Virus record (IMG/VR): IMGVR_UViG_3300047499_000113
Location: 1-64,000 of that record
Length of the DNA stretch: 64,000 nt
Direction: 5' to 3' (one strand)
In this document: positions 12,729 through 46,175 of the stretch, piece by piece
How the letters are laid out: every line of letters starts with the position of its first letter
How positions within the stretch are numbered: position 1 is the stretch's first letter
Position numbers and translations under genes: made by a program
Notes under the pieces: generated by a model
What the model was told of the DNA's origin: nothing
What the model saw: the letters and a program-made list of their open reading frames with translations, nothing else
The model's database searches: none

Positions 12729-15700
12729 TCAGAACAAGAGGTACCAGAATTCGACGATGTCGGTCGTCAGAAGAGCTGGATTGCTCCCGGAGACGATGTA
12801 TGTGACGGTTTGGTTGGTGGTGCCGCCAACTGTGTAGTTGAGCCCGTACTGGAGTTTGACGCCGTTGAGGAACATCTGCACGGCGGTCGGATCGAGCGGG
12901 CGGTTCGGAAGGGTGAAGGTGAGCTGCCCGTCCGAGGTGACCGGAAGGGTGATCTGCTCCTGCGAGTTGAGGGACACGTCCGACGACCCGAAGAACAGGG
13001 GGTTGTCGAAGATGTTCGTAACGAAAAGGGCCGGCGGAACCGGGAGAATGCCGGTGTTGACGTAGCCACGGCGCTTCTCCAAGGGCTTACCCAGGAGACG
13101 GTACCTGTCGACAGCGGTGAACCCTTCGTTGGTACCGGCAGCCGAGTGCGACACGTTCGTATCGCGGAAATAGGCCGGCACCGCCTGGGTGACGACGAAC
13201 ATCTGCAGCTCGTTGCCCATGTGGATCTCGGTGGAGCCCACAGACTCCGGCTGAGAACGCACAAGGAATGCGGAGCCGACGAGAAGCGACCCGGCGTTGA
13301 TGTTCGGGCGGACTTTCGGGAACCTCGAGGAGATCGGACCACCGACCCAAGGTGGCGTGACCGACCAGGCCGCACCTCCACGCGTCGTCTTGAACACCGT
13401 CGTACTGGCAGGATTCGCGGTGCCGTCGACTCGAATGACGGCTTCGGAACCAACGCCAGTCGTGCCCGATGTGTTGCCGCAGATGAACTCCGTGCCCTCC
13501 CAGGTCGATTCGCCAGGCGCGCTCGGGGCGAGCGACGCCTCGTAGTTCTGGAAGGTGAACGTGCCGACTGCGTTGGCGCCGACACCCGTGGAGTTGATCT
13601 GCTGGTAGAGGGTCTTGCCGACGAAGTCCTTGTCTCGGAAGTAGATGCCCATCGGCAGTTGCGAAGTGGCACCTGCGAATTCCGGCGGGACGAAGTTGTC
13701 GTAGACCGGATCCAAGCCACCGATCTTGGTCGGTGGGCGAGTCGCGACACCTGTGGGCGGAGTCGGTGAGTTAACGACCGGAAAGAGCTGGTCCGACCAG
13801 TCCTCGTAACCAACACGGTTCGCCGAGAAGCGACGTGCGAGATCGAGCAGGGTCCCGGCGTAATCCGGCGGGTTGTTCGGTGCCTCAAACGTGTCGAGGA
13901 GGGGTAGCGGCTGCGAACCCGAGAGACGACCCGTCCCGAGCGACATCACGAAGCTCGTGGACGCGAGCACCTCGAAACCGGTCTCGTTCGGGAGAGCCAG
14001 GCTCGAGATGGGACCCAGCGGGCTCGTGAAGATCGACGTGGCTTCTCCGACCGTCAGCGGTCCGAGCCTGTAGAGGTCGTCCGAATAGGCGTTCTGAGTT
14101 CCGAATGGATCGCCTTGGTACGGCTGGCGGCTGTAGTAGATCGTCAGCTCGTTGTTCGAAGCATTGCTCGAGAGCGGCGCCGGCGCGATGATGCCGATGG
14201 TGCCGTCCTGCGAGGTCGAGAACTGATCCTGCAGGATGACTCCGCCGCCCGTGTTCTTGGCGACGCAAACGCGTCCGTTGGTCTGCAGGAAGCCTCGATC
14301 GAATCCGAACAGGACGCACTCGACAACGAACTGGGCATTGTTGAAGTTCGTACCCGAAGGTGCCTTCGTGAAGTCCAGGCAATCGGCCGAGAGGATGAAG
14401 TATGGGTCTCCGTTGGCGTCCACGTTGAGCAGGACGGTCGGGCCGTCGTAGCTGTCGTGCAGGAGGTTGACGTCTGCTCCCGGCTGGCCAACGAACTGGC
14501 GATTGTTATTGAACGGGCTCGAGATGGGCTGCACCGCCGATCCCTGACGGAGATAGACGCCGGTGATGCGCGCCGGCGCGAGGAACGGCGGGAACTGAAT
14601 GCCCTGGAAGGGGCCGCCGTTGGCCGACTGGAGAGAGTTGTTCGTGTACTTGGTACCGAAGATGGAGAGAATACCCGCCTGCGTGCCGTAGGTCTCGCCA
14701 ACATTTGGCGTGACGATGTAGTAGCCCGGCGCGCTCGGATACGAGACGATATTCTCGTTGTAGCTCGAGTTGTTCAGGTTCGGGCCTTCTTGCGCCACGA
14801 ACATGAAATTCAGGCCGCTGGGAAACACGGCGTTGGTCGTCGCCTGCAGAGGGATGTGATGCAGACCCGGCCGCGGCAGATACTCCCACGGGATCTCGAA
14901 GTAGAGGCTGTTGACACCGTGGTAGAACAGGTTGAGGGCGTCGATGGTCGTCTGAGGCACGACCGGGTGCACGATATTGACGCCGTTCTGGTCCAGGCTC
15001 GGCATCGCGCCCTGGTACTGGATCGTCGGATTGAAGTACCAGTTGAGCTGCTGGCCGTTGCGCGCGAGAAGCTGCGGGACACGGACTTCGCGGTACGGAG
15101 CCGCGTAGACGGTCTTGCTGCCCGGGTCGACCATCACCTCGGAAGTCCGCGCGAGATTCCGGTTTACACCGGTCTGCACGTACGGCGAGTCGCCAAGATA
15201 CGTCGGGATCATGCGCGAAATGCCGGACAGGCCGCCGCGCAGAAGGGTCTGCGTCGTGTTGGACGCCGACCCGCGGTACCAAACCGTGTGGATGTAGTCC
15301 GGCTTGTGAGACAAGCCGCGACCAGCTCCGTAGACGACGGCGAAGTCGATGTGCATCACGACATTCGTGACGTAAGGAATCGCCGTGTTGCCCTGGAGAG
15401 CGTCCTTGAACTCCTGCAGTTCGGTGTCGACGCCACCGCTTTGGAAGCGGATGACGAGGTTTCCGTTCACATCGGTGGTGACGCTCAGGCCTTGACCGCT
15501 CTTGAGGACCTTGTTTCCCTGCGTCGGGAAGAGAAGATCCGGGTTGGAAGTCGTAGGCGCGGTCGTACCGGCCGACGTGACGACCTCGCCAGTCGTCATC
15601 GTGCCCGAACCGCCTGTGCACCCCGTGAAGCTCGAGCCGGAGATGGAGGTGTAGTTGACCGTCGAGCCGTTGATGTTGATGGTTCCGCCGCTCGAGGAGA

Positions 15701-17579
15701 AGCCCGAGGTCGAAGCCACGAAGATGGTTGCCTGAGGCAACGTCTGGCCGTTCGAACCTGCGGCGATCGTCGTCGATGGCAGCGATCCGTTGGGGTCCGA
15801 CGTCATTCCTTCGAATCGGATGACGACGGCGTCCGGGTCCTCGGAAGGCAACACGAACCTGACTTGATCCGAGTCCGAGCCCGGCATACCCGCGGCGAAT
15901 GGGGAGAGCTGGATGGTGATGGAGTCGCCGTTCCACCACGATGGGTAGAGGCCGCCCGACAGTCGGTTACCGGGCACGTGGATGGGCGGGGTGCCTGTCC
16001 ACAGAACCTCGACGTTGTAAGGGGCGACCGTGAACTGCAGCGGCGTGTCGATGAGCTGCGAGTTCGAAGGAACGACCACCGGGACGTTGAAGCGCTGCGT
16101 GGTCACCGCATCCGAGAACATGCGGCGGTTTCCATCCGGAGCATCGAGTCTCGTCAGCCCTCCGACGAACACTGAAGAATCGGTGATGCGGTCGCCGTAG
16201 AAGGTAACGGGTCCTGCCGAGTTCGTGCTTCCGAAACGCTTCCAGGTCGAGCGCAGGTTGCCCTTGAGAAGCTCGATGAAGTTCGTCTTGAGGATGCTGT
16301 CGTAGTCGAACTTGTCCGCCACCGAGTGGCGCATGTCGAGAATGTCAGTCGCCGCGATTTGGTCGGCGAACAGCCCGTCCGGGCGAATCGTGTACTCGAT
16401 GAGGGGAGTACCCGAGTTGTGCGCGCGGATCGTCGTCTGGAGCTGGCCGCGGTCGATGGTGCAGGTGAACGACGTCGGCGAGTTCTGCACGACGTTGTTG
16501 ATGCGGATGATCTCGTCGTTGAGGTAAAAATACGCCTCGCCAAACGAGTTCATCGTCTGCAGCACGGTGCCGGCGATGCTGTTGATGGTGAAAGACGTGT
16601 CGGTCAGCCCCATTGCGGATTGGAGCGCGAGAGAGGCCGTGTACATCGTCGCGTCGGAACGGGAGATGGCGACGCTATTGCGATTGAACGCGCCGGCGAG
16701 GTTGCCCGTGTCGGAAAACCCTGCTCCGTTGCGACGGAAAACGGTGCAGATGGGGATGGCATAAACGTAGCCGTCTGAGGTTCCGAAAGTCGCCGGGTCG
16801 CCGGTCCCCGCACGCCAAAGGCCCGGGTCGCCGAGCGTCTGGCGCATGTTGGTGAAGGGGACGCTCGAGGGCTGCAGCAGGAGGCCCTGCGCGAACACGA
16901 GACTCGGGTCGAACCCTTCTGGATACTGCGCGATGTTGATTCCCTGGACGACGCGGATGCGGTACTGGACCTGCACGCGCTTCGTGGTCGGGAAGTTCAT
17001 GTCCGGATCGATGAGGTCGTCCGGGATGTAGCTGAAACCGCCTTCGACGTTGCCGAATCTATAGATGAACCCGCGCTGCGGCTTGCCTGGTGCGACACCC
17101 GGAGGGGCGGGATCCACGTCGATGACTGCCTGCCACACCTCGAGGAACACGAACTCGGCGATGTTGCCGCCCGTCGAGGTCGACGGAGGATTGAGCAGGA
17201 TTTTGTTCCAGGTGTCGACGTCGTCGGCTGCCAGCGGGGGCTCGCCGGTCTCCGTCCCTGCCACAGGGATAGGCCACCCGTTGACGACAGCCCACGTGAG
17301 GTTACGGACCTCGCCCGGAGTGTTGCGACCGAAATAGAACAGGTTCGAGTTGTTGACGTTCGTGAAGAAGTCGGCCTTTGGATTGGCCTCGTTCATCAGC
17401 CATCCGGAAGGCATCTCGGCGCGGAGAGCCTCTGCACGCGATTCCCAGTCGACAAGCGAAACGAGGTTCAGCTCGGAGTCGAGCGGTGGCTTGTTCGCCT
17501 GGAATACAACGACAGCAAATTGCTTGTCGCGGTCGTCCGTGTACCGGGAGACTCCGGGGCCTAGGGGATTAGTCGGCAT
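12729..17579 (-). CDS. Large baseplate/tail-fibre-attachment protein (1616 aa), paralog of 26891..29632
   Basis: N-terminal VVFQANKPPLDSELN, FLEVW, TTKRVQVQYRIRV, DGYVYAIPICTVFRRN, RPDGLFADQI motifs shared with 26891..29632. Confidence 0.7.
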   Translation of the reverse strand: MPTNPLGPGVSRYTDDRDKQFAVVVFQANKPPLDSELNLVSLVDWESRAEALRAEMPSGWLMNEANPKADFFTNVNNSNLFYFGRNTPGEVRNLTWAVVNGWPIPVAGTETGEPPLAADDVDTWNKILLNPPSTSTGGNIAEFVFLEVWQAVIDVDPAPPGVAPGKPQRGFIYRFGNVEGGFSYIPDDLIDPDMNFPTTKRVQVQYRIRVVQGINIAQYPEGFDPSLVFAQGLLLQPSSVPFTNMRQTLGDPGLWRAGTGDPATFGTSDGYVYAIPICTVFRRNGAGFSDTGNLAGAFNRNSVAISRSDATMYTASLALQSAMGLTDTSFTINSIAGTVLQTMNSFGEAYFYLNDEIIRINNVVQNSPTSFTCTIDRGQLQTTIRAHNSGTPLIEYTIRPDGLFADQIAATDILDMRHSVADKFDYDSILKTNFIELLKGNLRSTWKRFGSTNSAGPVTFYGDRITDSSVFVGGLTRLDAPDGNRRMFSDAVTTQRFNVPVVVPSNSQLIDTPLQFTVAPYNVEVLWTGTPPIHVPGNRLSGGLYPSWWNGDSITIQLSPFAAGMPGSDSDQVRFVLPSEDPDAVVIRFEGMTSDPNGSLPSTTIAAGSNGQTLPQATIFVASTSGFSSSGGTININGSTVNYTSISGSSFTGCTGGSGTMTTGEVVTSAGTTAPTTSNPDLLFPTQGNKVLKSGQGLSVTTDVNGNLVIRFQSGGVDTELQEFKDALQGNTAIPYVTNVVMHIDFAVVYGAGRGLSHKPDYIHTVWYRGSASNTTQTLLRGGLSGISRMIPTYLGDSPYVQTGVNRNLARTSEVMVDPGSKTVYAAPYREVRVPQLLARNGQQLNWYFNPTIQYQGAMPSLDQNGVNIVHPVVPQTTIDALNLFYHGVNSLYFEIPWEYLPRPGLHHIPLQATTNAVFPSGLNFMFVAQEGPNLNNSSYNENIVSYPSAPGYYIVTPNVGETYGTQAGILSIFGTKYTNNSLQSANGGPFQGIQFPPFLAPARITGVYLRQGSAVQPISSPFNNNRQFVGQPGADVNLLHDSYDGPTVLLNVDANGDPYFILSADCLDFTKAPSGTNFNNAQFVVECVLFGFDRGFLQTNGRVCVAKNTGGGVILQDQFSTSQDGTIGIIAPAPLSSNASNNELTIYYSRQPYQGDPFGTQNAYSDDLYRLGPLTVGEATSIFTSPLGPISSLALPNETGFEVLASTSFVMSLGTGRLSGSQPLPLLDTFEAPNNPPDYAGTLLDLARRFSANRVGYEDWSDQLFPVVNSPTPPTGVATRPPTKIGGLDPVYDNFVPPEFAGATSQLPMGIYFRDKDFVGKTLYQQINSTGVGANAVGTFTFQNYEASLAPSAPGESTWEGTEFICGNTSGTTGVGSEAVIRVDGTANPASTTVFKTTRGGAAWSVTPPWVGGPISSRFPKVRPNINAGSLLVGSAFLVRSQPESVGSTEIHMGNELQMFVVTQAVPAYFRDTNVSHSAAGTNEGFTAVDRYRLLGKPLEKRRGYVNTGILPVPPALFVTNIFDNPLFFGSSDVSLNSQEQITLPVTSDGQLTFTLPNRPLDPTAVQMFLNGVKLQYGLNYTVGGTTNQTVTYIVSGSNPALLTTDIVEFWYLLF

Positions 17580-17629
17580 GTCCTAGCAGATCTCCGCTTC
17601 GAACCTTCAGGGTCTATGACCCCGGCAGC

Positions 17630-17641
17630 ATAAGCGTCCTA
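17630..17641 (-). promoter_or_regulatory. Candidate late-promoter motif TAG-N7-AT
   Basis: TAGGACGCTTAT upstream of 17579. Confidence 0.45.
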
Positions 17642-17654
17642 GCCACACTACCGC

Positions 17655-18326
17655 CTATCCGTAGATCAGGTACCAGTCCGAGACGTGGTACGGGATGGTG
17701 GAGTTGTTGATGAACTTGAGCCGGAAAGTCGCGGGATATGTGATGTTTGTCGGCACCGCGGAATCCGGCGTCGGAGTCGCGATGTCTGCGAAAGGCCCGG
17801 TCGACTGGCAAACGCTGACCGAAAACGTCGCGTTGTCGAAGTTCTCGAATGAACTGGTGCTAGGGTTGTACCCATAGAGGAGCTTGCTGATCGGCGTCGG
17901 GGACGTCGGATTCTGAACATCAACCGGAGAACGGAAGAGGCTGAATCCGCCGTAGTGGAGGCACGTTTGGTGCGCACCTGCCGCAATGGAGATCGGGTTC
18001 GTGAGGAGGGTGCCTCCAGGATAGATAACCGTCCGCTTGTTCGGTCCTAGCTCGATACCTGAAGAATTCACCGAGTCGACGTTGGGACTCGAGATGAGTT
18101 CGTCGGAGATGACGTTCGGGAAAGGGATGTTCTGCGACGTGAAAAAGACCGCCCACGCGTTCGATTTCTGCGTGATGAGGTCCGAAATGCTGTTGTCCGT
18201 GTTCGGAGAAACGGTCCCTATCTGCGGAGGGATGTCGATGACGTAGTGGCCACTGATGTCGAACAGCAGCGGCTCTTCGTAGACGCCGTGGATCGTATTC
18301 GTGGCGGGGTCGATAAGGACCTTCAT
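17655..18326 (-). CDS. Hypothetical virion protein
   Basis: 223 aa ORF with GAGG RBS in the structural operon. Confidence 0.7.
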   Translation of the reverse strand: MKVLIDPATNTIHGVYEEPLLFDISGHYVIDIPPQIGTVSPNTDNSISDLITQKSNAWAVFFTSQNIPFPNVISDELISSPNVDSVNSSGIELGPNKRTVIYPGGTLLTNPISIAAGAHQTCLHYGGFSLFRSPVDVQNPTSPTPISKLLYGYNPSTSSFENFDNATFSVSVCQSTGPFADIATPTPDSAVPTNITYPATFRLKFINNSTIPYHVSDWYLIYG

Positions 18327-18391: not shown

Positions 18392-18811
18392 CTACCCGCT
18401 GGATGCGACGTCGTGAACAGTGAAGATTCCCTGATAAAAATAGACCGTGAGCGGGTAGACTGCGCTCAAAGGAGACACCTGCACCGAAATGCTTCCCGTG
18501 GAATTTATGACCCTGTGAATCCTGATGCTTCCGTGACCTGAAATGGTCTGGACCACTCCTCCGCCAGAGATGGGTTCCCCACCGAGAGCGAACTGGACGA
18601 GCAACTGTATCGGCTGTTCGACGAACACACTCAGTGCAACATGGGCGAGAAACGTGTTTCCAAGACTAGGCGAAATCCCAATCCCGTTGGTAGTGGCGTT
18701 GGAGAAGTCACCCTGGTTTTCCCATGCGATATTCTGAGGGGTCCCGTTCGTCCAGATGTACGCGGCGTCCGGATCAGTGAGTCGGAACAGGTTGGAAAGC
18801 TCGCCGTACAT
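18392..18811 (-). CDS. C1q/BclA-CTD-like beta-sandwich protein, paralog 3
   Basis: YGELSN...IAWENQGDFS...YFYQGIFTVHD; aligns with the two adjacent upstream genes. Confidence 0.6.
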   Translation of the reverse strand: MYGELSNLFRLTDPDAAYIWTNGTPQNIAWENQGDFSNATTNGIGISPSLGNTFLAHVALSVFVEQPIQLLVQFALGGEPISGGGVVQTISGHGSIRIHRVINSTGSISVQVSPLSAVYPLTVYFYQGIFTVHDVASSG

Positions 18812-18817
18812 GCTGCC

Positions 18818-19243
18818 TCACGTATCGAGGTCTTGGATGGTGAAGGCGCCTTGATAGAAAGACGCCGTGCACGGAAGCGAGGGCAGAGACACCAAGTTCA
18901 CCCCGAGTCTCACGGAATCGCCAGTCCTTAGGGCCACCATCTTTTGCAGGCTCACCACTCGAGACCCGCCGAAAACTGAGCATGTGATCCCAGCGATATT
19001 CCCTCCCGCTGTGGAGAGAAACTGGAAAAAGAGTTGTATCGGCTGGCCCGTGTAAACAGACACGCTGGCCTTGAGCAGAAACTCACCGGCACCGGACACA
19101 ACGAATCCATTGTTCGACACAGTGACACCCGACAGGTCACTGCTTGACGTCCACGGGACTGCTTGTGTCTTGTATCTTGTCCAGGTGAGAGTTACCTCGG
19201 CGGGGTACATCAAGCTGACGTCGTTGTAGAGCTGGCCGTACAT
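18818..19243 (-). CDS. C1q/BclA-CTD-like beta-sandwich protein, paralog 2
   Basis: YGQLYND...VPWTSSSDLS...SFYQGAFTIQD. Confidence 0.6.
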   Translation of the reverse strand: MYGQLYNDVSLMYPAEVTLTWTRYKTQAVPWTSSSDLSGVTVSNNGFVVSGAGEFLLKASVSVYTGQPIQLFFQFLSTAGGNIAGITCSVFGGSRVVSLQKMVALRTGDSVRLGVNLVSLPSLPCTASFYQGAFTIQDLDT

Positions 19244-19680
19244 CAGTTTATTCCTTCGACAGAAAAAGCTCCCTGGAAGAAATAGACTGTAATCGGACTA
19301 GGAATCGGATTCGCAATGTTCACTTGCACAATGGCGGTGTCTTCCCCCGCAAGATAGCCCAGTTGCTGCAAGGAGACAGTCGTGACGCCCGGAAAAGCGT
19401 TTACGGTCACACCTGCAACGGGCAGGACCACACCGTCCGTCTGAAATGAGAACACCAGTTCGACGGGCGTCGGCGAGTAGAAACTAATGCTCGCAGTGAG
19501 CGAATATTCGATCGTGGGACCGATTTGGAGACCGTTCCCATTCCGGTTTATCCCGTTGAACGAGCCGGAATTTCGCCACGGCACGATCTGAACCGCCGGA
19601 AGCGATACCCACGCGAGAGCTGCTCCCGGGTCGGTCATCGACCAGTCGCTGTACAACTCACCGAAAGTTCCGGGGTCCAC
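19243..19680 (-). CDS. C1q/BclA-CTD-like beta-sandwich protein, paralog 1
   Basis: FGELYSD...VPWRNSGSFN...YFFQGAFSVEG. Confidence 0.6.
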   Translation of the reverse strand: MDPGTFGELYSDWSMTDPGAALAWVSLPAVQIVPWRNSGSFNGINRNGNGLQIGPTIEYSLTASISFYSPTPVELVFSFQTDGVVLPVAGVTVNAFPGVTTVSLQQLGYLAGEDTAIVQVNIANPIPSPITVYFFQGAFSVEGIN

Positions 19681-19693
19681 GCCCGGATGAGCG

Positions 19694-19705
19694 ATAGGAG
19701 CGCTA
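19694..19705 (-). promoter_or_regulatory. Candidate late-promoter motif TAG-N7-AT
   Basis: TAGCGCTCCTAT upstream of 19680. Confidence 0.4.
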
Positions 19706-19709
19706 GAGA

Positions 19710-21275
19710 CTAGAAGCCGGTGATCTGATACTGCAGCGTCTCGGACCCGACCGTGTGCGAGTACACGTTAATGTAGCTCTGGAACGGTGAATTCTGGAAC
19801 GCAGCCGCCCAAAGAGTTCCGGCAGCAGTCGATGATTTGACGGCGTTGATTTGTCCGGTGACGCCGGTGTAAATGGTCGAAACTAGCGTGGCCGAGGAGT
19901 TGTATCGAGCCACCCACTGATAGGTCGACAGTCCCGGCCCATTGATCTGCACGAACATCGTGTTGTCGATGGGATCGTAGTCCAACCGGCCCGTGATGAG
20001 AGTCGTCGCATACGGGGCTGGCGAAGTAGGCAGTGTGATGTATGGAGACCCGTCGGCAAAGATCTGAGCGGTTGATCCTCCGAAAGTCTGGTACGGGGAA
20101 TTCGGATTTCCGCCAATAGACCACATGACGTGGCCAAAAATGTAGTCCACCCAATAAGTAGTCGGGTACGTGTTGGCGCTGTTGTATTGAGTGGACGAAA
20201 CCGTGGCTAGGGTTGAGGCATTCACCTCGAATAGCACTTCATAGTCACCAAAGAAGAAGCTGATGTTGTCAGCTGTGCCTCCCCAAAGGTGACCAGTGCT
20301 GGAGTTGTACCCCATATGGCGGAGGTTCCAGTTGAACCCCGTGTACGTGTCGGTATTGGCTGCAACTGGAGTGACTGCAGTCGGAAACGCCGTGATAGCA
20401 GCTGCCGTATTGAACTGCAGGATGTTCGCGCCGGAAGTGGGGTGGATGTTTATGTCGCTGACGCAAGTATAGAGAGAGCCACCCGTGGCGACTGCTGAGT
20501 CCGGAAAAATGACAGCATATTGAACGCCACCATAGAGTGGATTCATGTACCCAACGACATTGAGCGTCGACTTGTCGATGACTAGGATGTACACGGTGCT
20601 ACCCTGGCCAGATGGTAGCGCATACACATAGTTCGCATCGGCTGCGAAGGCTGCCGCTCCGCGATTCGAACCAGTCCAACCGGCGGATACGGGCACGTTG
20701 ATCACCGCATGGGTGGCGCCCGTCGTCCCATCCAAAACTGGAATGACGGCAGTCGTTTGCTCGACATCAGCGACGTACATCAAGTTGTTGACTGAGTCGT
20801 AGTACAAGTCCTGGATGAATTTGAACGGCGTAAGTGGGAATGGCGTCGGTTGAACAGCCTTTGTGATGAAAACGTCTGCGGTGACGTTCACGACAGCCTG
20901 AGTGCTGCCGGTGTTGAACACCATCTGCAGGCGGTCAGGACTGGATGCTGCAGTCACTGTGAAGGTCCAGGAGGACGCGGAAGAACTTCCGAACTGATCA
21001 ACAGTATCCGAGGCACTAACTACCGTGACGCCGGCGATTCGACTTACCGCGAACCTCTGGACGAAGGACTGAGAGGCTGTCGAAGTGAGGATGTAACCGT
21101 TTGCGCTCACGCGGATTTCAATGGTTCCGCTGTAGCCACTCGGCAGGACAAAGTACGTGTTGATCGGCCCGACAGCACCAGAGGGACCGGCGTTGACCAG
21201 TGCAATAGACTCTCCGACCGCGTTGCCGGGTGTGGACCCGGTGAGAGTGACGTCGGGGAGAGGCTGGAAAGTCAT
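19710..21275 (-). CDS. Putative receptor-binding protein: shared N-terminal adaptor plus beta-propeller
   Basis: N-terminus PLPDVTLTGSTPG...SFVQRF...SSWT...SPDR...TGST shared with 21278..22735 and 22738..23790; propeller blades DLYYDSVNNLMYVAD etc. Confidence 0.65.
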   Translation of the reverse strand: MTFQPLPDVTLTGSTPGNAVGESIALVNAGPSGAVGPINTYFVLPSGYSGTIEIRVSANGYILTSTASQSFVQRFAVSRIAGVTVVSASDTVDQFGSSSASSWTFTVTAASSPDRLQMVFNTGSTQAVVNVTADVFITKAVQPTPFPLTPFKFIQDLYYDSVNNLMYVADVEQTTAVIPVLDGTTGATHAVINVPVSAGWTGSNRGAAAFAADANYVYALPSGQGSTVYILVIDKSTLNVVGYMNPLYGGVQYAVIFPDSAVATGGSLYTCVSDINIHPTSGANILQFNTAAAITAFPTAVTPVAANTDTYTGFNWNLRHMGYNSSTGHLWGGTADNISFFFGDYEVLFEVNASTLATVSSTQYNSANTYPTTYWVDYIFGHVMWSIGGNPNSPYQTFGGSTAQIFADGSPYITLPTSPAPYATTLITGRLDYDPIDNTMFVQINGPGLSTYQWVARYNSSATLVSTIYTGVTGQINAVKSSTAAGTLWAAAFQNSPFQSYINVYSHTVGSETLQYQITGF

Positions 21276-22710
21276 GGTCAGTATTGGGTGATGGTTGCCA
21301 GGAAGGATTCTGTCCCTATGCCTGTTGAATAGATATCGATGTGTCCTTTGGCGGGCGAAAAGTCGTACTGCCCGACCCAGAGCCCCAGGGGCTCAGCCGC
21401 AGCGACGTAAGCGCGGCCGTTCACGCCTGCATTACCGAAGATGGAGGCTTGCGTGTTGGAGCTTGCAGCAATGCGCCAGATGTTCTGAGCACCGTAGCTG
21501 TTACCATTGAGCATGGCTGCAAGCACGGTGTCATGGTATGGGTCGTACGAGATCGCCGTTGGTGCGGGAAGACCGGAGGCAGGTGCAGGAGCACTCGCGC
21601 TCAAGAAGATGAAAGTTGATAGGTCACGAAGCACCGAGCCTGGCGTGCTGTCGAAGTTGTAGTTCGGAGCGTTGAAATTACCGTGACCGATGCAGAACCA
21701 AACCGACGAGTCCGCGAAACAGCCGTGGTAGGTGAACACGCCTTCGGTTGTCGGATTGGTGTCGATCGAGTACGTGGTGACGGAGCTTTCAGACAGAGCA
21801 CTTGTGAGCTGCACCAAAACAGCCTGTGACGACGAGACGTAACATCCTGCCCACAGAAGGCTGTCGTTCGGGTCCCAAACAATCCCGCGGAAATCGCGGC
21901 TCACAGTCGTATTGGCATCCGGCGACGCGGGTGTCGGGTATGACGAGATGACCGACGAGATGGTAAACCGGTAGATGATGTTCCCGGACAACGAGATCGC
22001 GTACAAGTGCGTTCCGTCCGAAGCCAGGTCGTAACCACCGAACCCCGTGGAAAGGTTGGCGATGCCGATGATGGAGCAGTGCACAGGGTCGATGATGAGA
22101 ATGTGCTTCTGGAACCAATTGCTAGCGTAGATGTACGTGCCGTCACCAATGATCCGTGTGGCACCGGTCGTCCAGCTGGCACTGGTGGCGTTGACAACCG
22201 CTTTCGGGCTGCGAGTCGCGGCCTGGAAAACCGGGATATCTGGATTCGAGAGATTCGGGTCTCCAATCCACATATTGTCGTTGGTGGAATCGTAGAACAG
22301 ATCCCAAACCTGAACGAACGAGCGGACCGGCGGAGCAGTCCCAGGCTTGATGGACCTCGTGACCTGTATGTCGGCTCGCACGGATGTGTAAGCCTGGGTA
22401 CTGCCGGTCGTGAATGTGAGGGCGAATCTGTCCGGACTCGAGCCCACTGAAGCGGTCACCGTCCACGACGAGGCACCTGCATCGCCAAGCTGATCCAGCG
22501 TATTGGACGCGACGATTGTCGTCACACCTGAATCTCGGCGGACACAAAACCTACGAATGAAAGACTGGGAAACAAACGCTCCCGAGATGATGCCGCTGGC
22601 AGCTACCCGAACTTGGAGTGTGAAGCTCTCGTTGTCGGTTAGGGTGAAGTGAGGCAGCAACTCCACAGACTCGCCCGTCGCGAATCCAGGTGTGGACCCG
22701 GTGAGAGTGA
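21229..22710. repeat. 22-bp identical repeat in the 5' ends of two RBP paralogs
   Basis: GGTGTGGACCCGGTGAGAGTGA at 21229-21250 and 22689-22710. Confidence 0.85.
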
Positions 22711-22735
22711 TGTCGGGAAGCGGTAGAAAGCTCAT
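21278..22735 (-). CDS. Putative receptor-binding protein: shared N-terminal adaptor plus beta-propeller
   Basis: Same adaptor; DLFYDSTNDNMWIGD, DLASDGTHLYA, GIVWDPNDSLLWAG blades. Confidence 0.65.
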   Translation of the reverse strand: MSFLPLPDITLTGSTPGFATGESVELLPHFTLTDNESFTLQVRVAASGIISGAFVSQSFIRRFCVRRDSGVTTIVASNTLDQLGDAGASSWTVTASVGSSPDRFALTFTTGSTQAYTSVRADIQVTRSIKPGTAPPVRSFVQVWDLFYDSTNDNMWIGDPNLSNPDIPVFQAATRSPKAVVNATSASWTTGATRIIGDGTYIYASNWFQKHILIIDPVHCSIIGIANLSTGFGGYDLASDGTHLYAISLSGNIIYRFTISSVISSYPTPASPDANTTVSRDFRGIVWDPNDSLLWAGCYVSSSQAVLVQLTSALSESSVTTYSIDTNPTTEGVFTYHGCFADSSVWFCIGHGNFNAPNYNFDSTPGSVLRDLSTFIFLSASAPAPASGLPAPTAISYDPYHDTVLAAMLNGNSYGAQNIWRIAASSNTQASIFGNAGVNGRAYVAAAEPLGLWVGQYDFSPAKGHIDIYSTGIGTESFLATITQY

Positions 22736-22737
22736 GA

Positions 22738-23790
22738 TTAGAACAACGCAATCTTGTAACGGGCGCTCGCGTAATTCATGTATTGCGCGATTTCAGCTGC
22801 ATTGATGACACGAGGCCACAGGATTTGCTCGGCGACATAAGACTGGTTGCTGCCAAGATTTTGATCGAGACTTGATGTGATGGTGGTTGGGGTCGTACCA
22901 CTCCCCGTCGCTCGAACAGCTGTCCCGTTCACGTAGAGACTGACCGCACCACCCGAGGTGAATGTGCCAATGATGATACCCGGCACAGCTCCGAGGGTCA
23001 CTCCAGTATACTCGACGACGCTACCTTCGTAGATGTATGGGTAGCAAGGAGACGACGAAACGCCTGTGCTTGGACCTGTGGTCTGCCAGACGAAGGTCCC
23101 TCCCGCCAGTCCGCCCCTATAAACCGAGGCAATCGTCCAGCCAACGGCTGAATTCAGGGAGAGCGCACCTGAGAACAGCTCTCCGAGAACGGCGGCCGGG
23201 GATCCGATTGAAGCTTGATGGTTGAATGTTGAATCGGACGCGTTCCATAGCGGCTGTTGCGAAGGCGTCGACTGTGACAGGTCTGTGTGGAAACTGGTCT
23301 GATCGGCCCAAAACGACACGTTGCCGGCGTTCAGAGTCACACCAAGATCGGCTCTGTGAGCTTCGATGGGGCCGACCGGGATCGAGAGCAGGAAGTTGTT
23401 CGGTTCGACGGTGACCCGAATGTCGGCCGTGACGTTGACGATGGACCTCGTGCTTCCAGTCGTAAACGTGAGTTTGAATCTGTCAGGGCTCGTCCCAACA
23501 GTCGCAGCCAACGTCCATGAGGAACCACCGGAATCTCCGAAAGCATCCTGGGAATCGCTGGCGACAATAGTAATCACCCCCAAGCTGCGTCTCACGGAGA
23601 ACCTCTGCACGAAGGATCGGATCGTCCTCGTGGCAGGATAGACATAGCCTGCAGCCACCACGCGCACTTCGAACGTCAAGCTATGATTGTCAGCGGGCGT
23701 GAAGTGCGGCAAAAGTTCGACAGATTCGCCCGTGACAGAACCCGGAGTGCTGCCCTTGAGAGAAATGTCGGGTAGCGGCAGGTAGCTCAT
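22738..23790 (-). CDS. Putative receptor-binding protein: shared N-terminal adaptor plus LamG/concanavalin-like domain
   Basis: Likely start ATG 23790 (MSYLPLPD); VSFWADQ...LSQSTPSQQP, SLYVNG, VAEQILWPRVINAAEIAQYMNY pattern typical of phage LamG-like lectin domains. Confidence 0.65.
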   Translation of the reverse strand: MSYLPLPDISLKGSTPGSVTGESVELLPHFTPADNHSLTFEVRVVAAGYVYPATRTIRSFVQRFSVRRSLGVITIVASDSQDAFGDSGGSSWTLAATVGTSPDRFKLTFTTGSTRSIVNVTADIRVTVEPNNFLLSIPVGPIEAHRADLGVTLNAGNVSFWADQTSFHTDLSQSTPSQQPLWNASDSTFNHQASIGSPAAVLGELFSGALSLNSAVGWTIASVYRGGLAGGTFVWQTTGPSTGVSSSPCYPYIYEGSVVEYTGVTLGAVPGIIIGTFTSGGAVSLYVNGTAVRATGSGTTPTTITSSLDQNLGSNQSYVAEQILWPRVINAAEIAQYMNYASARYKIALF

Positions 23791-24728
23791 CAGACGATCT
23801 TGTAGTGACTGCCCGTCCATTGCCAGTCGATAGACTGGCTGTTCACGGAGATTTGGACTGACGTCGCGAAATTCCCTTGATTGTTCGGATCCTCGATGGG
23901 ACGGCTGGCTTGACTCTGGACCGTGATCGGATAGGTCGCAGCGAATCCTGTGTCATCAGTCACTCGGAAGAGCTGCTGGGTTGTGGGCAGGGTGAGGTCC
24001 GGAGCGTTGACTGTCGTGGTAGCCACGCTCGTGTCTACGATGGCCTGCAAGTGAGAGGAGTCGAGAGTGCCGGTCGATGGGTTGGCGTTCCCAACATTGA
24101 TGAAGCCGACCGGAACACCGATAACAGTTCCTCCTCCACCAGAGGCATTGGAAGAGATGACCTTCCACTGGTCATAAGATTCCACGAACTCCCACGTAAC
24201 GACTTGCGAATTCGTGTGGATGGTAACGCTGGACGAATAGGTTCCAGGACTGTTCGGGTCCTCGATCTGGAATCCGTTGCCGTAGACCGTGATGTTGTTG
24301 GTTGCAGCGTTATTGTTTGCGTCAGCAACCGTGCAAACCCAGTCGATGGTCCCGTAAGTCGTCGCATCTATCAGGTTGACTGTCACCGGTCCTGACAGAG
24401 TGTCCACCATCGCTGTCAGCGACGTTGGCGTCAGCGTGATGGTGCTGGAGCTGAGAGTCTGACCTGCTTGACGGCCTCCATTCGAGAATCCGAGAGGCCG
24501 GTTCATATAGCGAATGCTATTGAAATTCCTGTCTTCCCATGCGCCAGTGTAGAGGGCAATGGTGTTGATACCGAGGCCCGACTGGTAAATCGGGACAACG
24601 ACAGTTCCGGAACTGTCAACTGCTATTCCTCGAGGAGATGCACCCAATCCCGGAGACTGTGTAGTAAACAGAATCTCCCCCGTCTCGGGATGTATGCGAT
24701 AGACTGTCGAGGGGCTTGCGGCAGGCAT
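23790..24728 (-). CDS. Fibre protein with two T4 gp34-like beta repeats; probably the C-terminal part of 24732..26891
   Basis: Two copies of VDT-x4-5-TVN...D...AAT.xITV...IEDPN...NSQ...W; in frame with the upstream ORF, separated only by TAA-ACC. Confidence 0.6.
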   Translation of the reverse strand: MPAASPSTVYRIHPETGEILFTTQSPGLGASPRGIAVDSSGTVVVPIYQSGLGINTIALYTGAWEDRNFNSIRYMNRPLGFSNGGRQAGQTLSSSTITLTPTSLTAMVDTLSGPVTVNLIDATTYGTIDWVCTVADANNNAATNNITVYGNGFQIEDPNSPGTYSSSVTIHTNSQVVTWEFVESYDQWKVISSNASGGGGTVIGVPVGFINVGNANPSTGTLDSSHLQAIVDTSVATTTVNAPDLTLPTTQQLFRVTDDTGFAATYPITVQSQASRPIEDPNNQGNFATSVQISVNSQSIDWQWTGSHYKIV

Positions 24729-24731
24729 GGT

Positions 24732-26891
24732 TTATGGATTCCCGATAGATGCGTAAATGGAAACCCCGTCCCACACCAATCGACCGCCGAACGGTGCAGG
24801 AATCGTCACTGACGAGATCTCAGATCCGATCTGAGTCTCCGTACCCACTCCTGTCGTGTAGCGGAATAGACCTCGAGTCGGGAAATCAGCGACGGTAACC
24901 CAAATGGCTGTGGGAGTTATGACCGCGGAACTGTTTCCACCAATAGGTGGAACCCACGTCGACACTTCAAGATTAGTCGATGTGCTAACGCGACTGACGC
25001 TCTCGCTCTCATCACCAACCAGAATAGTGCCGAACGTGGCATCGTAGCTCAAGGCGCTTGATGTGCTTGTAGAAGTGACGATGTTCGTGAATGCACCGCC
25101 AGCGGGGAACGCGGTCGGATCGACTCGGAAAAGATTCCCCGAGTACCCGCTAAAGACGGAGCCCGTGGACGCCCAGATAGACCCGGCCGCCGCAAGAACG
25201 AACTGGATGCACGGGTAGGCACTTCCTGTTCCCGGGAAATCGAAGTGAGAAATTTCGACCAGAGTGCTCGTGTTTAGCTTCACGAGTGACTCGGTGACTC
25301 CAGTTTCGTTTTGAGTACCTGCGAAAACGGTCCCCGTCACTGGGTCATAGGCACAAGCGTGGTATCCACGCTGTACGGGCGAAGTGACCGATGGTCCGAT
25401 AGCCGACGGATATGAGGACAACGCCGTGGCAATGGAATACTTCTGGATGTTGCTGCTTGTGAGGCTCGAGTAGTTACTCGCAACGATGTAGATGTTGCCA
25501 GCCCCGTCGAGGGTTTGGTCCTGCACGGTAAGACCGGCACCGGCATCCAGCATCCCAACGATAGCACCTGTCGTCTTGTTGACGATGATCAGGTACCTAT
25601 CGAATCCGAACCCGTTAGAGATGTAGACGTAGTTGGAGTCACCGATGACTCGACTGGCGCCGTTTCCAATGGCAGTAAGATCAACCGCTAGGTCTCCAGC
25701 TTGAGTAGCTGCCTTTATCGAGACGGCCGTGCCGAGCTTCTGGTCGGCCACCCACACATTGTCGTTGGGAGCGTCGTAGAACAGATCTCTGGGGCTAGAG
25801 AAACTGACTGTATCGCCAGACGCCGGCAGTGGAATCACTGGACCAGCGTTTCCAGACGTCAGGTCCCACGCGTAGATCGTCGGAATACCAGAATTGCTCG
25901 CAAGAATACGAGCAAACCGTCCATCCGAGATCATATCCAGGGCCGTCACACCGGTCGCGATTGTACTCACTTGAGTAAGCGAGTAGGTAGAGAAATTGAT
26001 AGAGAATTTGACTAGACTTTGGCTAGTGTTATATGCGACCCAAAGGAATCCGGCGTCATCGAGAAACATCGCGTTTGGCGCGTCGCCTGTTGTAAACGCA
26101 TCGTGAATGGTGCCAACAGAATCCACGATGTAGATGTGCCCGTTGGTCGCGCTGAAAGCGAATTGCGGGGTGGTGCTTAGAACTGGGTCACCACCACCGC
26201 CTCCAATGAAGCACGCACGCACGGGTGCTGACGTCGTCGCAGTGTGGTAACTCTGGACGTAATACATGTTCGGGGGCGTGCCATTGATTGTTCCGCATTC
26301 TACGAACAACCCGTCGGGAAAAGCCCCGAAAATGTTATCCTGAGGAGACGGGAACACCGTTCCCGTCTGGCCACGAATGCCGATCAAGTCGACCGGCGTG
26401 TCCCCATAATTGGTCAGCGAGCCACTCATCACTGATTGCGGAACGAACAGGTCGATACCAACGAGAGCACCCGGTGTTTTGGAATATCCAACATAGAAAA
26501 ACTTGTCACCGATGAAACATGTGGCGATTCCAGCCACCTGAGTTAGATAGTCGGTGAGTACGCTGATCCCGAGGTTGGCTGGAAAAATGTAGCCGGGGGA
26601 TATTGGCGTATTGGAAGCGAGCAAATCGTTCCTTCGCAGGAATGGCTGCTTCCTTGTGCGCAGAGTAGTCGCGTTATCCGTGAACCCACCGCCGCCTGTG
26701 ATGTTGATCGTAGCCACACCGCTGCCGGCGTCCGCCGCGGTCACACTCCCAGTGAGATTGAGGATGGTATGCGGGTTATTCGGGATGGGAGTGCCAGCCT
26801 GCTCGATGCTGACACCCGGAGTCCCACCACCAGCTCCCGATTCAACGGGAACGACGGGCTCTGGAGTAAGCTGTACGAACGGCCTGGGCAT
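24732..26891 (-). CDS. Beta-propeller tail/receptor-binding protein
   Basis: Contains a propeller paralogous to 19710..21275 and 21278..22735 (DLFYDAPNDNVWVAD...RYTTGVGTET) plus additional blades. Confidence 0.65.
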   Translation of the reverse strand: MPRPFVQLTPEPVVPVESGAGGGTPGVSIEQAGTPIPNNPHTILNLTGSVTAADAGSGVATINITGGGGFTDNATTLRTRKQPFLRRNDLLASNTPISPGYIFPANLGISVLTDYLTQVAGIATCFIGDKFFYVGYSKTPGALVGIDLFVPQSVMSGSLTNYGDTPVDLIGIRGQTGTVFPSPQDNIFGAFPDGLFVECGTINGTPPNMYYVQSYHTATTSAPVRACFIGGGGGDPVLSTTPQFAFSATNGHIYIVDSVGTIHDAFTTGDAPNAMFLDDAGFLWVAYNTSQSLVKFSINFSTYSLTQVSTIATGVTALDMISDGRFARILASNSGIPTIYAWDLTSGNAGPVIPLPASGDTVSFSSPRDLFYDAPNDNVWVADQKLGTAVSIKAATQAGDLAVDLTAIGNGASRVIGDSNYVYISNGFGFDRYLIIVNKTTGAIVGMLDAGAGLTVQDQTLDGAGNIYIVASNYSSLTSSNIQKYSIATALSSYPSAIGPSVTSPVQRGYHACAYDPVTGTVFAGTQNETGVTESLVKLNTSTLVEISHFDFPGTGSAYPCIQFVLAAAGSIWASTGSVFSGYSGNLFRVDPTAFPAGGAFTNIVTSTSTSSALSYDATFGTILVGDESESVSRVSTSTNLEVSTWVPPIGGNSSAVITPTAIWVTVADFPTRGLFRYTTGVGTETQIGSEISSVTIPAPFGGRLVWDGVSIYASIGNP

Positions 26892-29632
26892 TAGTGCGCC
26901 ACCCTTCTCGGATTGAGCATGTTCCCGGGAACTCGATAGACCGCAGCAGCGCTGTCACTGAGACCGGGCTGCAATCCGATGTTCACGTTCTGGTCGAACT
27001 CACCCCAGCGACTAAAGACGACCATAACGAGAGTGCCCTTCCTCCCGATGCTTCCTACACCGATGCCTCCATTGAAATCGGCTCGCAGTTCCATGAGAAC
27101 GGGGAACGCCACTTTGTGCTGCTGCGCCAAAGACATCGACTGACCCCAAATGACGGGCGAGTAAATCGGAGGACTCCCGGAATCGGATCGCGGCCAGAAG
27201 TTCCGGTTGTCACCATCGATTGTCGTGTCTGGCGCGAGCTTGTAGAGCTGCACCTGGCCGGGATCGGGAGAGTATGGGATCATCGCCTGCAACTGCAGAT
27301 AGCCGGCGTTGATGCCGAATCCGACAACCGAAATTGCACTCGGGGAATCGAGCCGTGCCTCCGGGTAATCCGATGGTGGTAGCAAACCGATCGGAATTTG
27401 AGCGCTGGGAGAGACATACGGGAACGAATCGTCCGGGCTACCCGATCCTTGAGTGAGCAGGTGAATGGCTTTGGGGATCGCGCGAGCGTAGAGCGGCAAC
27501 GTGATCGGACCACCCGACGGGACCGGAATGGACTGAATCGCTGCAGTGTTGTACCAGATCTGGTACGAATCGTCCGGCGCGGCACCGACCGTAGGAAGAG
27601 GACGAAGCGCTACGAAGGTCGCCTGCACTGGCGTGTTGGCCGAGACAGCGGGGCTCAAAGTTACCTGCGTGTAGTTCGCGTTCACCACGTACGCAGTCGT
27701 CGTATACGGCGGGTTGATACCGTCGTTGATGGATACGGTTCCGGAGAGCTTCTCCGGGATCCAGATAGCCGCACCGGTGGAATCCGCGTAGTACATGTTC
27801 GGCCCCTGCGCAGTCGTGCGAAGACGCGCCGCGACCTCACGATGCCCTGGATTGGCCCACCAGAGGTTGGTCGTGTCAGTCGGAGACCCGGGATTCGTGA
27901 GTGCGAACCGTCCGCCGTCACTCGTTGGCGAAAGCTGAGTGGCGTCTACCCACACCGGTAGACTGGCTGCCGGTGGAGTCCAGAACGCCACCGAATTGAG
28001 CATGTTGCGTTTGGTGCCGTTGTCATTCAAGTATTCTATCCACAGCTCTGCTTGGATCGTGAAGCTCGAGCCAGGGGCTGTGTTGAGGTTGACTGTAACC
28101 GTGTCTATTGGGCCACCGAGCGTGCTGGCAGTCAGAACGACCGACTGCGCGAAGACCGTGTTGGTCAGATCCGTCAGGTCGAGGTCTGTACTCGAGACGA
28201 GCATCCGCAAGGATCCAACACCAGAGATGTTCGTCCCGGCGGGGGCCAAAGCGGCGAGATTCACAGTGCCGGGCGCCAGGTACACAGGTGACAACGCATT
28301 GAGGTGAAACACCACGGTAGTCGTGGAACCCGTCTGCGACCCGCTCGTGACAGCAATCGACTCGGTAATCGATCTGTCGCTGAAGTTGATACGAACGCCG
28401 TCAGAAGTCCCAATGTGACCAGGCGGGCTCGTGATGTCGTCCTTGTAAAGGAACGAGGTTCCGCCGATGACGTTCGAGATGCCGAAGTCTTGATTGTACT
28501 CGAGTTCGGTAGCGAGTGTGTTGTCGAGAAGGCGTTGGAACGTCTTGTCGAGGACTTCCGTCAGATCCCACGCCACGCCCTTGCGCAGATCGAGAACATC
28601 CGACACGACGATCTGATCGGCGTACAGGTTGTCGGGTCGACCGGAAACCGCCGATCCCATGAGCCCGGCACCATTGACGTTGGTCATCCTGTCGAACGGT
28701 GCGCTATTACGACGGAAGACCGCACAAATCGGAACGGCGTACATGTAGCCGTCGACTGTCCCGAGCAGCGCCGCAGAAGGAGAGTCTCCCGTACCAGCTA
28801 TCCAGAGCCCAGCGTCTCCGGGCGAAGGCATGTACTGAAACCCCGTGGGAGATCCATCGGGACCCGGAGAAGGGTAAGCGGGGATAGTGTTGGCGACTGC
28901 GACAGGGCAGTCGAGTCCGTCCGGAAAAGCCTGCAGCCATTTGTCCGGAAGATTCGAGATGACTCGATATCTGTACTGGATCTGGACTCGCCTCGCAGTT
29001 TCCTCAGCAAAGGTCGGATCCACGAGGTCGTCCGACAAATTCTGGTTGGGACTGACGTCGGGACTTTTGACGTTGCCGTAGCGCAAAATCTGCCCGGCCT
29101 GGCTTTTGTTCGTCGAGTCCGGGGCCGGCGACACCAAAGCCCTCCAGACCTCGAGAATGACCAGATCGGTGCGTTCTCCGCCAAGAGGCGGAGCCGGAAG
29201 AACAACGTAGTTCGTTCCTTGCACGCCGTAATTGGGCAGCGTCGTGTTGGCTTCGATGGCCGTGAGGTTGAAGTTCACGAGCCAGCCGTTGACGTTCACC
29301 GTCGAGGCGGATAGAGCGAACGTGTTGGCCGTGGTCGAAGACGTCGTGTCAGGCGCTAGAAACGTGTAGTCTCCCGTGACGTTCGAGCGCTCGAGGAAAT
29401 CTGCGTTGAGCCATCCCGAAGGGAGAAACTGCTGACTCAGGAGCCGAATGCCGGCCGCCCCAAGGATCGACTGCAGGAGGTTGATCTCCCAGTCGGCGGA
29501 CGGCTTGTTCTGCTGGATGACAAGCTGCTCCCACGAGTGGTCCTGGGACGTGTATGCGCCACTCCCGTTCGCAGGTTCCTGGACCTTCTGCGGGTTCTGA
29601 CTGACGTTCGGTCCGAGGTTCTCGAATCCCAT
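26891..29632 (-). CDS. Baseplate/tail-fibre-attachment protein (913 aa), paralog of 12729..17579
   Basis: QQNKPSADWEIN, ILEVW, ETARRVQIQYRYRV, DGYMYAVPICAVFRRN, RPDNLYADQI. Confidence 0.7.
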   Translation of the reverse strand: MGFENLGPNVSQNPQKVQEPANGSGAYTSQDHSWEQLVIQQNKPSADWEINLLQSILGAAGIRLLSQQFLPSGWLNADFLERSNVTGDYTFLAPDTTSSTTANTFALSASTVNVNGWLVNFNLTAIEANTTLPNYGVQGTNYVVLPAPPLGGERTDLVILEVWRALVSPAPDSTNKSQAGQILRYGNVKSPDVSPNQNLSDDLVDPTFAEETARRVQIQYRYRVISNLPDKWLQAFPDGLDCPVAVANTIPAYPSPGPDGSPTGFQYMPSPGDAGLWIAGTGDSPSAALLGTVDGYMYAVPICAVFRRNSAPFDRMTNVNGAGLMGSAVSGRPDNLYADQIVVSDVLDLRKGVAWDLTEVLDKTFQRLLDNTLATELEYNQDFGISNVIGGTSFLYKDDITSPPGHIGTSDGVRINFSDRSITESIAVTSGSQTGSTTTVVFHLNALSPVYLAPGTVNLAALAPAGTNISGVGSLRMLVSSTDLDLTDLTNTVFAQSVVLTASTLGGPIDTVTVNLNTAPGSSFTIQAELWIEYLNDNGTKRNMLNSVAFWTPPAASLPVWVDATQLSPTSDGGRFALTNPGSPTDTTNLWWANPGHREVAARLRTTAQGPNMYYADSTGAAIWIPEKLSGTVSINDGINPPYTTTAYVVNANYTQVTLSPAVSANTPVQATFVALRPLPTVGAAPDDSYQIWYNTAAIQSIPVPSGGPITLPLYARAIPKAIHLLTQGSGSPDDSFPYVSPSAQIPIGLLPPSDYPEARLDSPSAISVVGFGINAGYLQLQAMIPYSPDPGQVQLYKLAPDTTIDGDNRNFWPRSDSGSPPIYSPVIWGQSMSLAQQHKVAFPVLMELRADFNGGIGVGSIGRKGTLVMVVFSRWGEFDQNVNIGLQPGLSDSAAAVYRVPGNMLNPRRVAH

Positions 29633-46142: not shown

Positions 46143-46175
46143 GCCTACCCACAATACGGGGATAAGAACTGGATG

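Follow-up and report, generated by a model that had tools for sequence, protein, structure and literature searches.

The DNA considered here, hereafter the window, is the first 64 kb (positions 1 to 64,000) of the 240,015-bp IMG/VR virus record IMGVR_UViG_3300047499_000113, whose completeness is estimated by CheckV at 56%. The same contig is present in ENA assemblies. From ~8.8 kb to 64 kb of the window, genes on the minus strand follow one another nearly without gaps, and among them, at positions 18,392 to 19,680, are three small adjacent genes, termed C, B and A, that are the subject of this analysis:

19243..19680, minus strand: paralog C, 145 amino acids, GTG start, first gene of the triplet (open reading frame call, three-paralog alignment)
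18818..19243, minus strand: paralog B, 141 amino acids, ATG start (open reading frame call, three-paralog alignment)
18392..18811, minus strand: paralog A, 139 amino acids, ATG start (open reading frame call, three-paralog alignment)

Independent gene callers, as used for the public assemblies, made identical calls of 145, 141 and 139 amino acids. The stop codon of C and the ATG of B share one base (TGATG), and A begins 6 nucleotides past the stop of B; such tight spacing of C, B and A is ordinary for the operon as a whole. An alignment of the three proteins covers their full length and has 21 invariant columns; these include an N-terminal (Y/F)G(E/Q)L, a W...Q..(P/A)W segment and a C-terminal F(Y/F)QG.F strand. 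Pairwise BLASTP places B and C closest together (33.8% identity, E 3e-21), followed by A and B (29.5%, E 1.7e-13) and A and C (29.1%, E 1e-11). This similarity is far beyond chance: A, B and C are true paralogs, as an initial inspection of the DNA (the sequence-only reading) had recognized from the same motifs, and they are the only members of their family in the 240-kb genome. That reading had also credited the three genes with an upstream motif of their own, a claim that did not hold, as the 45 nucleotides upstream of each start share neither a common motif nor a Shine-Dalgarno-like element. Promoter- and terminator-like sites are no more common in the region than in shuffled sequence, and none lies between C, B and A.

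Family databases do not name these proteins. Pfam returned no family for A, B or C at E <= 1, save one irrelevant weak match, and the C1q (PF00386), BclA_C (PF18573) and TNF (PF00229) families gave no match above the gathering score. PHROGs and NCBIfam held nothing for them, and a sequence-profile search of the PDB found no TNF-like chain, only spurious PDZ matches. Their fold was assigned from structure prediction. Given the alignment of the three sequences, AlphaFold2 (AF2) modelled A as an all-beta, helix-free protein, with a predicted local distance difference test (pLDDT) score of 86 and a predicted template modelling score (pTM) of 0.83. Searched against the PDB with Foldseek, this A model placed ExsFA/BxpB, cyanophage A4 gp24, BclA and TNF ligands on top (E 1e-6 to 1e-4), and other matches were the A-1(L) fibre cell-binding domain, Bc2L-C, the phi812 spike knob and PRD1 P5. 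VIA-align gave Z scores to the A model of 15.2 for BxpB (root-mean-square deviation, rmsd, 2.0 Å over 124 residues at 16% identity), 14.9 for the cell-binding domain of A4 gp24, 14.7 for ExsF, 13.6-13.8 for BclA, 13.6 for the cell-binding domain of A-1(L) gp33, and about 12.2 for the C1q, C1QL and cerebellin heads. Superpositions on BxpB, A4 gp24, BclA and C1q span 114-129 aligned residues at 2.0-2.6 Å rmsd.

Predictions made elsewhere agree. The ESM Atlas contains B (pTM 0.79), and its neighbours there are BclA_C, C1q and collagen-tipped phage proteins (features 0.94-0.96, structural TM about 0.8); the A model matches a BclA_C cluster with a TM of 0.83. Matches of the fold in BFVD include collagen-like and other long phage proteins, along with stand-alone viral proteins of 130-156 amino acids that have no assigned function. 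The predicted models have the ten-strand, two-sheet jelly roll of the superfamily, about 130-140 residues long and superposable on solved members, and they strongly support a TNF/C1q/BclA-like jelly roll for A, B and C. Each protein consists of this domain alone, which begins at residue 1-3 and runs to the C-terminus, and A, B and C have no stalk, collagen (Gly-X-Y) repeat, signal peptide or anchor. Both the fold and the stand-alone character had been proposed at first inspection, and both were borne out.

The best structural match is BxpB/ExsFA/ExsF of the Bacillus cereus-group exosporium (PDB 8d02, 7r1m, 9h3d), which aligns to the A model at Z 14.1-15.2, 2.0-2.5 Å rmsd and 16-17% identity. 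Like the triplet proteins, BxpB/ExsF is a stand-alone single TNF-like domain, of ~150 amino acids, and it trimerizes; unlike them, it is homotrimeric and has an N-terminal arm that is disordered and contains Cys. The ligand of BxpB/ExsF is the exosporium leader carried by collagen-like proteins. In ExsF, three leader peptides sit in the clefts where adjoining subunits meet (PMC12357932), and BxpB is stabilized by the BclA N-terminal peptide (PMC10470788). This match and this mode of binding speak for one alternative, in which the triplet would form a BxpB/ExsF-type hub, hetero- or homotrimeric, that binds no host and clamps the terminal peptides of fibres, fastening receptor-binding proteins or collagen-like fibres to the baseplate. 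A, B and C, however, lack the arm of BxpB, and no leader-bearing partner was found here.

BclA is the outermost spore antigen. Its C-terminal domain and those of cyanophage A4 gp24 (PDB 9k09) and A-1(L) gp33 (PDB 8ke9) have the same fold as the triplet proteins, and the two phage domains are cell-binding domains that form the distal knobs of tail fibres (PMC12002296). Whereas these knobs are homotrimers fused to a stem and an anchor, the knob subunits of the triplet are separate genes in three versions. Stalk-less members of the fold are also found among lectins. Invertebrate stand-alone globular-head C1q proteins (e.g., OXYL) are reported to be stalk-less trimers that act as glycan-binding lectins (PMC6409975), and the N-domain of the TNF-like lectin Bc2L-C (PDB 6tid), a stalk-less trimer, resembles the triplet at the level of fold. 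Unlike the triplet, OXYL-type lectins and Bc2L-C are cellular, secreted proteins.

In complement C1q, the head is an obligatory 1:1:1 heterotrimer of three paralogous chains from side-by-side genes, and the termini of the chains lie at its base. The C1q head (PDB 1pk6) has the same jelly roll as the triplet proteins (Z about 12.2), and the triplet likewise consists of three paralogous chains encoded in tandem; unlike C1q, it lacks a collagen stalk and a PF00386 match and is phage-borne, and its heterotrimer is a prediction. A second precedent is virophage DSLV2, in which three consecutive gp37-like tail paralogs co-purify as one 1:1:1 heterotrimeric fibre (PMC12724248). That trio matches the triplet in comprising three tandem paralogs of similar lengths, with the same layout and proposed logic, but it forms a gp37-tip-like needle rather than a TNF-like jelly roll and is conserved across its lineage. 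No report of a heterotrimeric TNF/C1q-like phage knob was found in the searchable literature.

A heterotrimer of C, B and A had been proposed from the sequence, and complex prediction with ESMFold2 supports its feasibility. The C+B+A trimer reaches an interaction score from predicted aligned errors (ipSAE) of 0.76, compared with 0.04 for the best control, a mark attained by 51 of 78 solved complexes and 2 of 108 mismatched pairs in a test that close cousins of the true partner also pass and in which solved look-alike complexes may be remembered. The scoring covers the C+B+A stoichiometry. At least 91% of contacts recur from run to run, and partner pLDDT is 88. The model thus shows that A, B and C can be built into a TNF-like trimer. 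According to the predicted contacts, the N-terminal face of A packs on B and its C/D/F-strand face on C, giving a pseudo-C3 ring; at the base of the trimer, every chain contributes both its N- and its C-terminus to the interface.

The predicted three-fold axis bears on the choice between mixed and uniform trimers. Columns that touch their own counterpart across chains carry unlike residues in the three proteins of the model:

axis column 103: Arg97 in A, Ser98 in B, Ser103 in C
axis column 62: His57 in A, Lys58 in B, Thr62 in C
axis column 105: His99 in A, Gln100 in B, Gln105 in C
axis column 64: Ala59 in A, Ser60 in B, Ser64 in C
axis column 142: His133 in A, Gln in B, Glu142 in C

The predicted interface holds all four His of A and two of the three basic residues of A. 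Because of these axis residues, an A3 trimer would gather three Arg97 and six His on its axis, and a B3 trimer three Lys58; in the ABC model, one long cation of A stands among hydroxyl and amide groups of B and C. Such asymmetry resembles the negative design that makes heterotrimers specific and, if the modelled side chains are right, would favour a heterotrimer.

Alternatively, the three proteins could form three separate homotrimeric knobs, A3, B3 and C3, serving as alternative lectin-like adhesins of different specificities that widen the host range. Multiple receptor-binding proteins have this effect in other phages. Nearly all solved bacterial and phage members of the fold are homotrimers, including BxpB/ExsF, BclA, A4 gp24 and PRD1 P5, and diversification by duplication is a local habit, as seen in the adjoining receptor-binding-protein paralogs. 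Homotrimers would also be compatible with the C+B+A score, and independent ones would be allowed by interface positions that have diverged as much as the surfaces. The crowding of charge predicted for the A3 and B3 axes argues against them, and the equal lengths and tight coupling of the genes fit an equimolar complex. Three homotrimers are possible, though doubtful.

The wider setting of the triplet is a block of structural genes on one strand:

12729..18326, minus strand: 223-amino acid gene and 1616-amino acid tail-fibre-like gene, conserved right border of a variable slot (the 1616-residue protein matches phrog_1101 "tail protein")
19710..23790, minus strand: three receptor-binding-protein paralogs (521, 485 and 350 amino acids), immediately upstream of C (alignments)
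23790..26891, minus strand: 312- and 719-amino acid genes, opening the variable cassette (BLASTP; weak NHL/lactonase propeller matches)
26891..29632, minus strand: 913-amino acid gene, conserved left border of the slot (BLASTP paralogy, slot comparison)
40170-41795, same minus-strand block: collagen-like tail fibre, 541 amino acids (Pfam Collagen and many "tail fiber" PHROGs)
42690-46154, same unidirectional minus-strand block: gp6-like baseplate wedge protein (phrog_6)

A Big_5 protein is also encoded in this block. Because the genes for the wedge, the collagen-like fibre, the Big_5 protein and the 1616-residue tail protein share it with the triplet, the triplet belongs to the module in which a huge phage encodes its baseplate and fibres.

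Related huge phages, identified through homologs of the 1616-residue neighbour, have genomes of 274-427 kb; two of these genomes are complete and bear terminal repeats. The genes bordering the slot are kept in these phages (the right-border genes have homologs at 56-70% identity), and the content between them varies in a comparison that spans L004, L005, L006, L008 and L009:

L006 and L009: a 913-like gene followed directly by a 223-like gene; the slot is empty
L005: 483- and 73-amino acid genes in the slot
L004 (a 363-kb record): 719-like, 312-like and three receptor-binding-protein genes in the same order, without the triplet
the window: an 8.5-kb cassette at 18392-26891, encoding proteins of 719, 312, 350, 485 and 521 amino acids, then C, B and A

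In L004, unrelated small open reading frames and metabolic genes come after the last receptor-binding-protein gene. As judged from these gene orders, the slot is hypervariable and concerned with host range, and the triplet was added to it in a lineage-specific manner; neither the conserved neighbours nor the receptor-binding-protein trio need the triplet.

The receptor-binding-protein paralogs have in common a beta-sandwich N-domain of ~130 amino acids (50-63% identity), the model of which matches the Klebsiella phage Kp9 fibre gp42 (Z 10.8), and they differ in their C-terminal domains. Two of the C-terminal parts are propeller-like, and one has a weak ConA/LamG-like match; the C-terminal two thirds of the 350-residue protein have no confident fold prediction. 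Orthologs of the trio lie at 8964-12744 of L004. With one N-domain in common, these paralogs could, by sequence, themselves be a heterotrimer. An alignment of the triplet with the shared N-domain by hhalign showed no relation. A likeness of the receptor-binding-protein N-terminus to the exosporium leader was also considered and is unsupported: in an NCBIfam scan (E <= 10; very weak matches may be filtered by HMMER), neither the three paralogs nor other neighbours matched the leader profile (TIGR03720).

These observations bear on the docking hub. Three receptor-binding proteins with a conserved N-terminus directly upstream of C would offer it ready clients, yet their N-termini match neither the exosporium-leader profile nor any other NCBIfam model, and L004 has the same trio without the triplet; a hub with no host-binding role is unlikely. 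A bolder variant, which we consider quite improbable, joins the two ideas: an obligate ABC knob of asymmetric build with three dissimilar clefts, every one of them occupied by a different member of the upstream set of three propeller- or lectin-type receptor-binding proteins, which are probably monomeric. If so, a single hub would show three receptor specificities at once and would combine a stalk-less analogue of the C1q head with ExsF-type peptide docking.

Several further features of the cassette and its borders were observed. The longest open reading frame for the 350-residue protein, at 22738-23820 on the minus strand (360 amino acids), probably starts too early; an internal ATG at 23790 gives a protein of 350 amino acids beginning M-S-Y-L-P-L-P-D, as in the other receptor-binding-protein paralogs, shares one base with the stop of the 312-residue gene and agrees with the start that other gene callers chose. 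The minus-strand genes at 19710, 21278, 22738 and 23790, that is, the receptor-binding proteins and the 312-residue protein, encode a similar short C-terminal strand (listed as Y-Q-I-T-G-F, A-T-I-T-Q-Y, Y-K-I-A-L-F and Y-K-I-V), which may serve in closing or docking. In the 719-residue protein, the C-terminal part has homology to the propeller-like portion of the 485- and 521-residue proteins. At the borders, the 1616-residue (12729-17579, minus strand) and 913-residue proteins have their first ~320 residues in common (34% identity), probably a baseplate-attachment module. The N-terminal part of the 1616-residue protein matches a "tail fiber protein" gene of the 309-kb Tunturiibacter phage Tunturi_5, as well as Bacillus phage G gp420 and a 485-kb uncultured phage. 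Among cultured phages, Tunturi_5 was the closest relative encountered, though a distant one that has no triplet.

Outside this genome, the triplet has no detectable kin. A word-indexed search of 5.8 billion clusters returned the query proteins A, B and C only, and an exhaustive profile search of 1.84 billion representatives found no full-length homolog beyond them. No further family member appeared in a pattern scan of IMG/VR, no homolog of the triplet in a tblastn search of 50,697 phage genomes in GenBank, and no match in a blastn search of phages with the cassette. The triplet profile found nothing in six related huge-phage records and two small fragments; a 13-bit match within a 929-residue open reading frame of Tunturi_5 was dismissed. 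As far as these searches reach, the triplet family is an orphan without a detectable full-length relative.

The sole other profile matches were long Kre9_KNH proteins with immunoglobulin (Ig)-like repeats (PF10342), and these were judged to reflect motif similarity rather than homology. They match only profile positions about 5-42, many times over, through a "W..G..Q.I.W" strand-hairpin motif; in one example, 43 matching stretches sum to 174 bits. A, B and C were not placed in PF10342 because they give no full match to its ~90-residue Ig-like repeat, receive no Pfam call and have a TNF-like fold.

Taken together, these results are best explained if A, B and C are stalk-less TNF/C1q/BclA subunits made together from one long tail-fibre and baseplate operon. 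Most likely, C, B and A would co-assemble 1:1:1 into a single pseudo-threefold heterotrimeric knob with all of its termini gathered at the base, as in the C1q and BclA heads. Such a knob would be an accessory, specific to the lineage, of the apparatus with which this huge moss/soil phage recognizes its host. It might bind a cell-surface glycan, as the fold does at cyanophage fibre tips and in TNF-like lectins, or might be a hub to which fibre ends dock, in the manner of stand-alone BxpB/ExsF. An accessory fibre knob was chosen because the fold, where understood in phages and spores, is a distal binding knob or a docking block. By analogy with these systems, the knob is most likely an adhesin, and the docking hub is the main functional alternative. 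From the models and the gene neighbourhood, we infer that A, B and C form a heterotrimer instead of homotrimers, are present in the virion and function as adhesin or hub; to co-assembly of A, B and C as a heterotrimer we assign a probability of roughly 0.5.

A number of points weigh against this interpretation. The mixed trimer itself is predicted with confidence; the C+B+A score nevertheless says little about ABC versus AAA, BBB and CCC, and it does not separate a heterotrimer from homotrimers because cousins of the true partner pass too. The axis argument rests on side-chain detail of an unaligned ESMFold2 model, and polar or His/Arg-lined axes also occur in ion-holding homotrimers. Predicted-interface and remaining positions are equally conserved among the paralogs, at about 30% in both, a pattern that fits a hetero- or a homotrimer. 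Orthologs of A, B and C are absent from all searched sets, and the relatives in which retention of three copies would show have no copy at all; the public runs with phage sequence include no RNA run and offer no informative polymorphism. Finally, A, B and C have no recognizable attachment element, and L004 keeps the receptor-binding-protein trio without the triplet.

The missing attachment domain would also suit a non-structural role, in which the three proteins are fibre-assembly chaperones or an intracellular or secreted factor encoded by chance in the fibre block. Small genes after fibre genes are often chaperones, as with Pam3 gp25, which consists of a beta-sandwich and a helical trimerization domain (PMC9608196). 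The A model is helix-free, unlike Pam3 gp25, known fibre chaperones differing in architecture, and no Pfam or PHROG chaperone family of the Tfa/gp38/Pam3 gp25 type was matched. A trimerization chaperone had been among the initial suggestions and was given up, as A, B and C have no feature of known fibre chaperones. Moreover, wherever its role in phages is known, the fold is a terminal knob or binding domain, and a non-structural role is very improbable indeed.

Public read runs contain DNA of this phage in moss-metagenome runs only, including low-depth DNA contigs of the same phage. In run X9, a 225-nucleotide contig (depth 4.1) spans 18914-19071 and fuses position 19071, in B, to 20171 onward, in the gene for the 521-residue protein, dropping 1099 bases that include the whole of C. 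The contig, which also carries a 1-nucleotide insertion at 18997, is prone to error and the skip does not keep the reading frame, so that an artefact of assembly or a defective variant is the probable explanation.

Other observations concern the genome at large. The phage genes need no alternative genetic code. From 8 to 46 kb of the window, most genes have no recognizable Shine-Dalgarno sequence and many are joined by 1-4-nucleotide overlaps, which on sequence grounds suggests a host with weak Shine-Dalgarno usage or heavy reliance on translational coupling. Two giant collagen-repeat proteins of 1567 and 2295 amino acids (61% mutual identity) are encoded outside the window, at 118345-129935 of the genome, and their repeat region is common to the 541-residue collagen-like fibre (window 40170-41795). 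Within the baseplate block lies an HNH/endonuclease VII-like gene (48106-48798, minus strand), with two paralogs in the genome at ~194.8 kb and ~212.6 kb.

To our knowledge, it is rare for phage fibres or their knobs to be anything but homotrimers. The stand-alone triple arrangement of C1q/BclA-like genes described here is unusual, and a heterotrimer is plausible, if unproven. Were the three proteins ordinary homotrimers, they would be another fast-evolving set of accessory adhesins in the hypervariable host-range region of a huge phage. If a heterotrimeric TNF/C1q-like knob is indeed formed, a single tip would present three faces and three clefts, a compact way of combining specificities that would parallel, by convergence, the head of complement C1q, and it would give a function to the many uncharacterized stalk-less C1q/BclA-like proteins of phage metagenomes.

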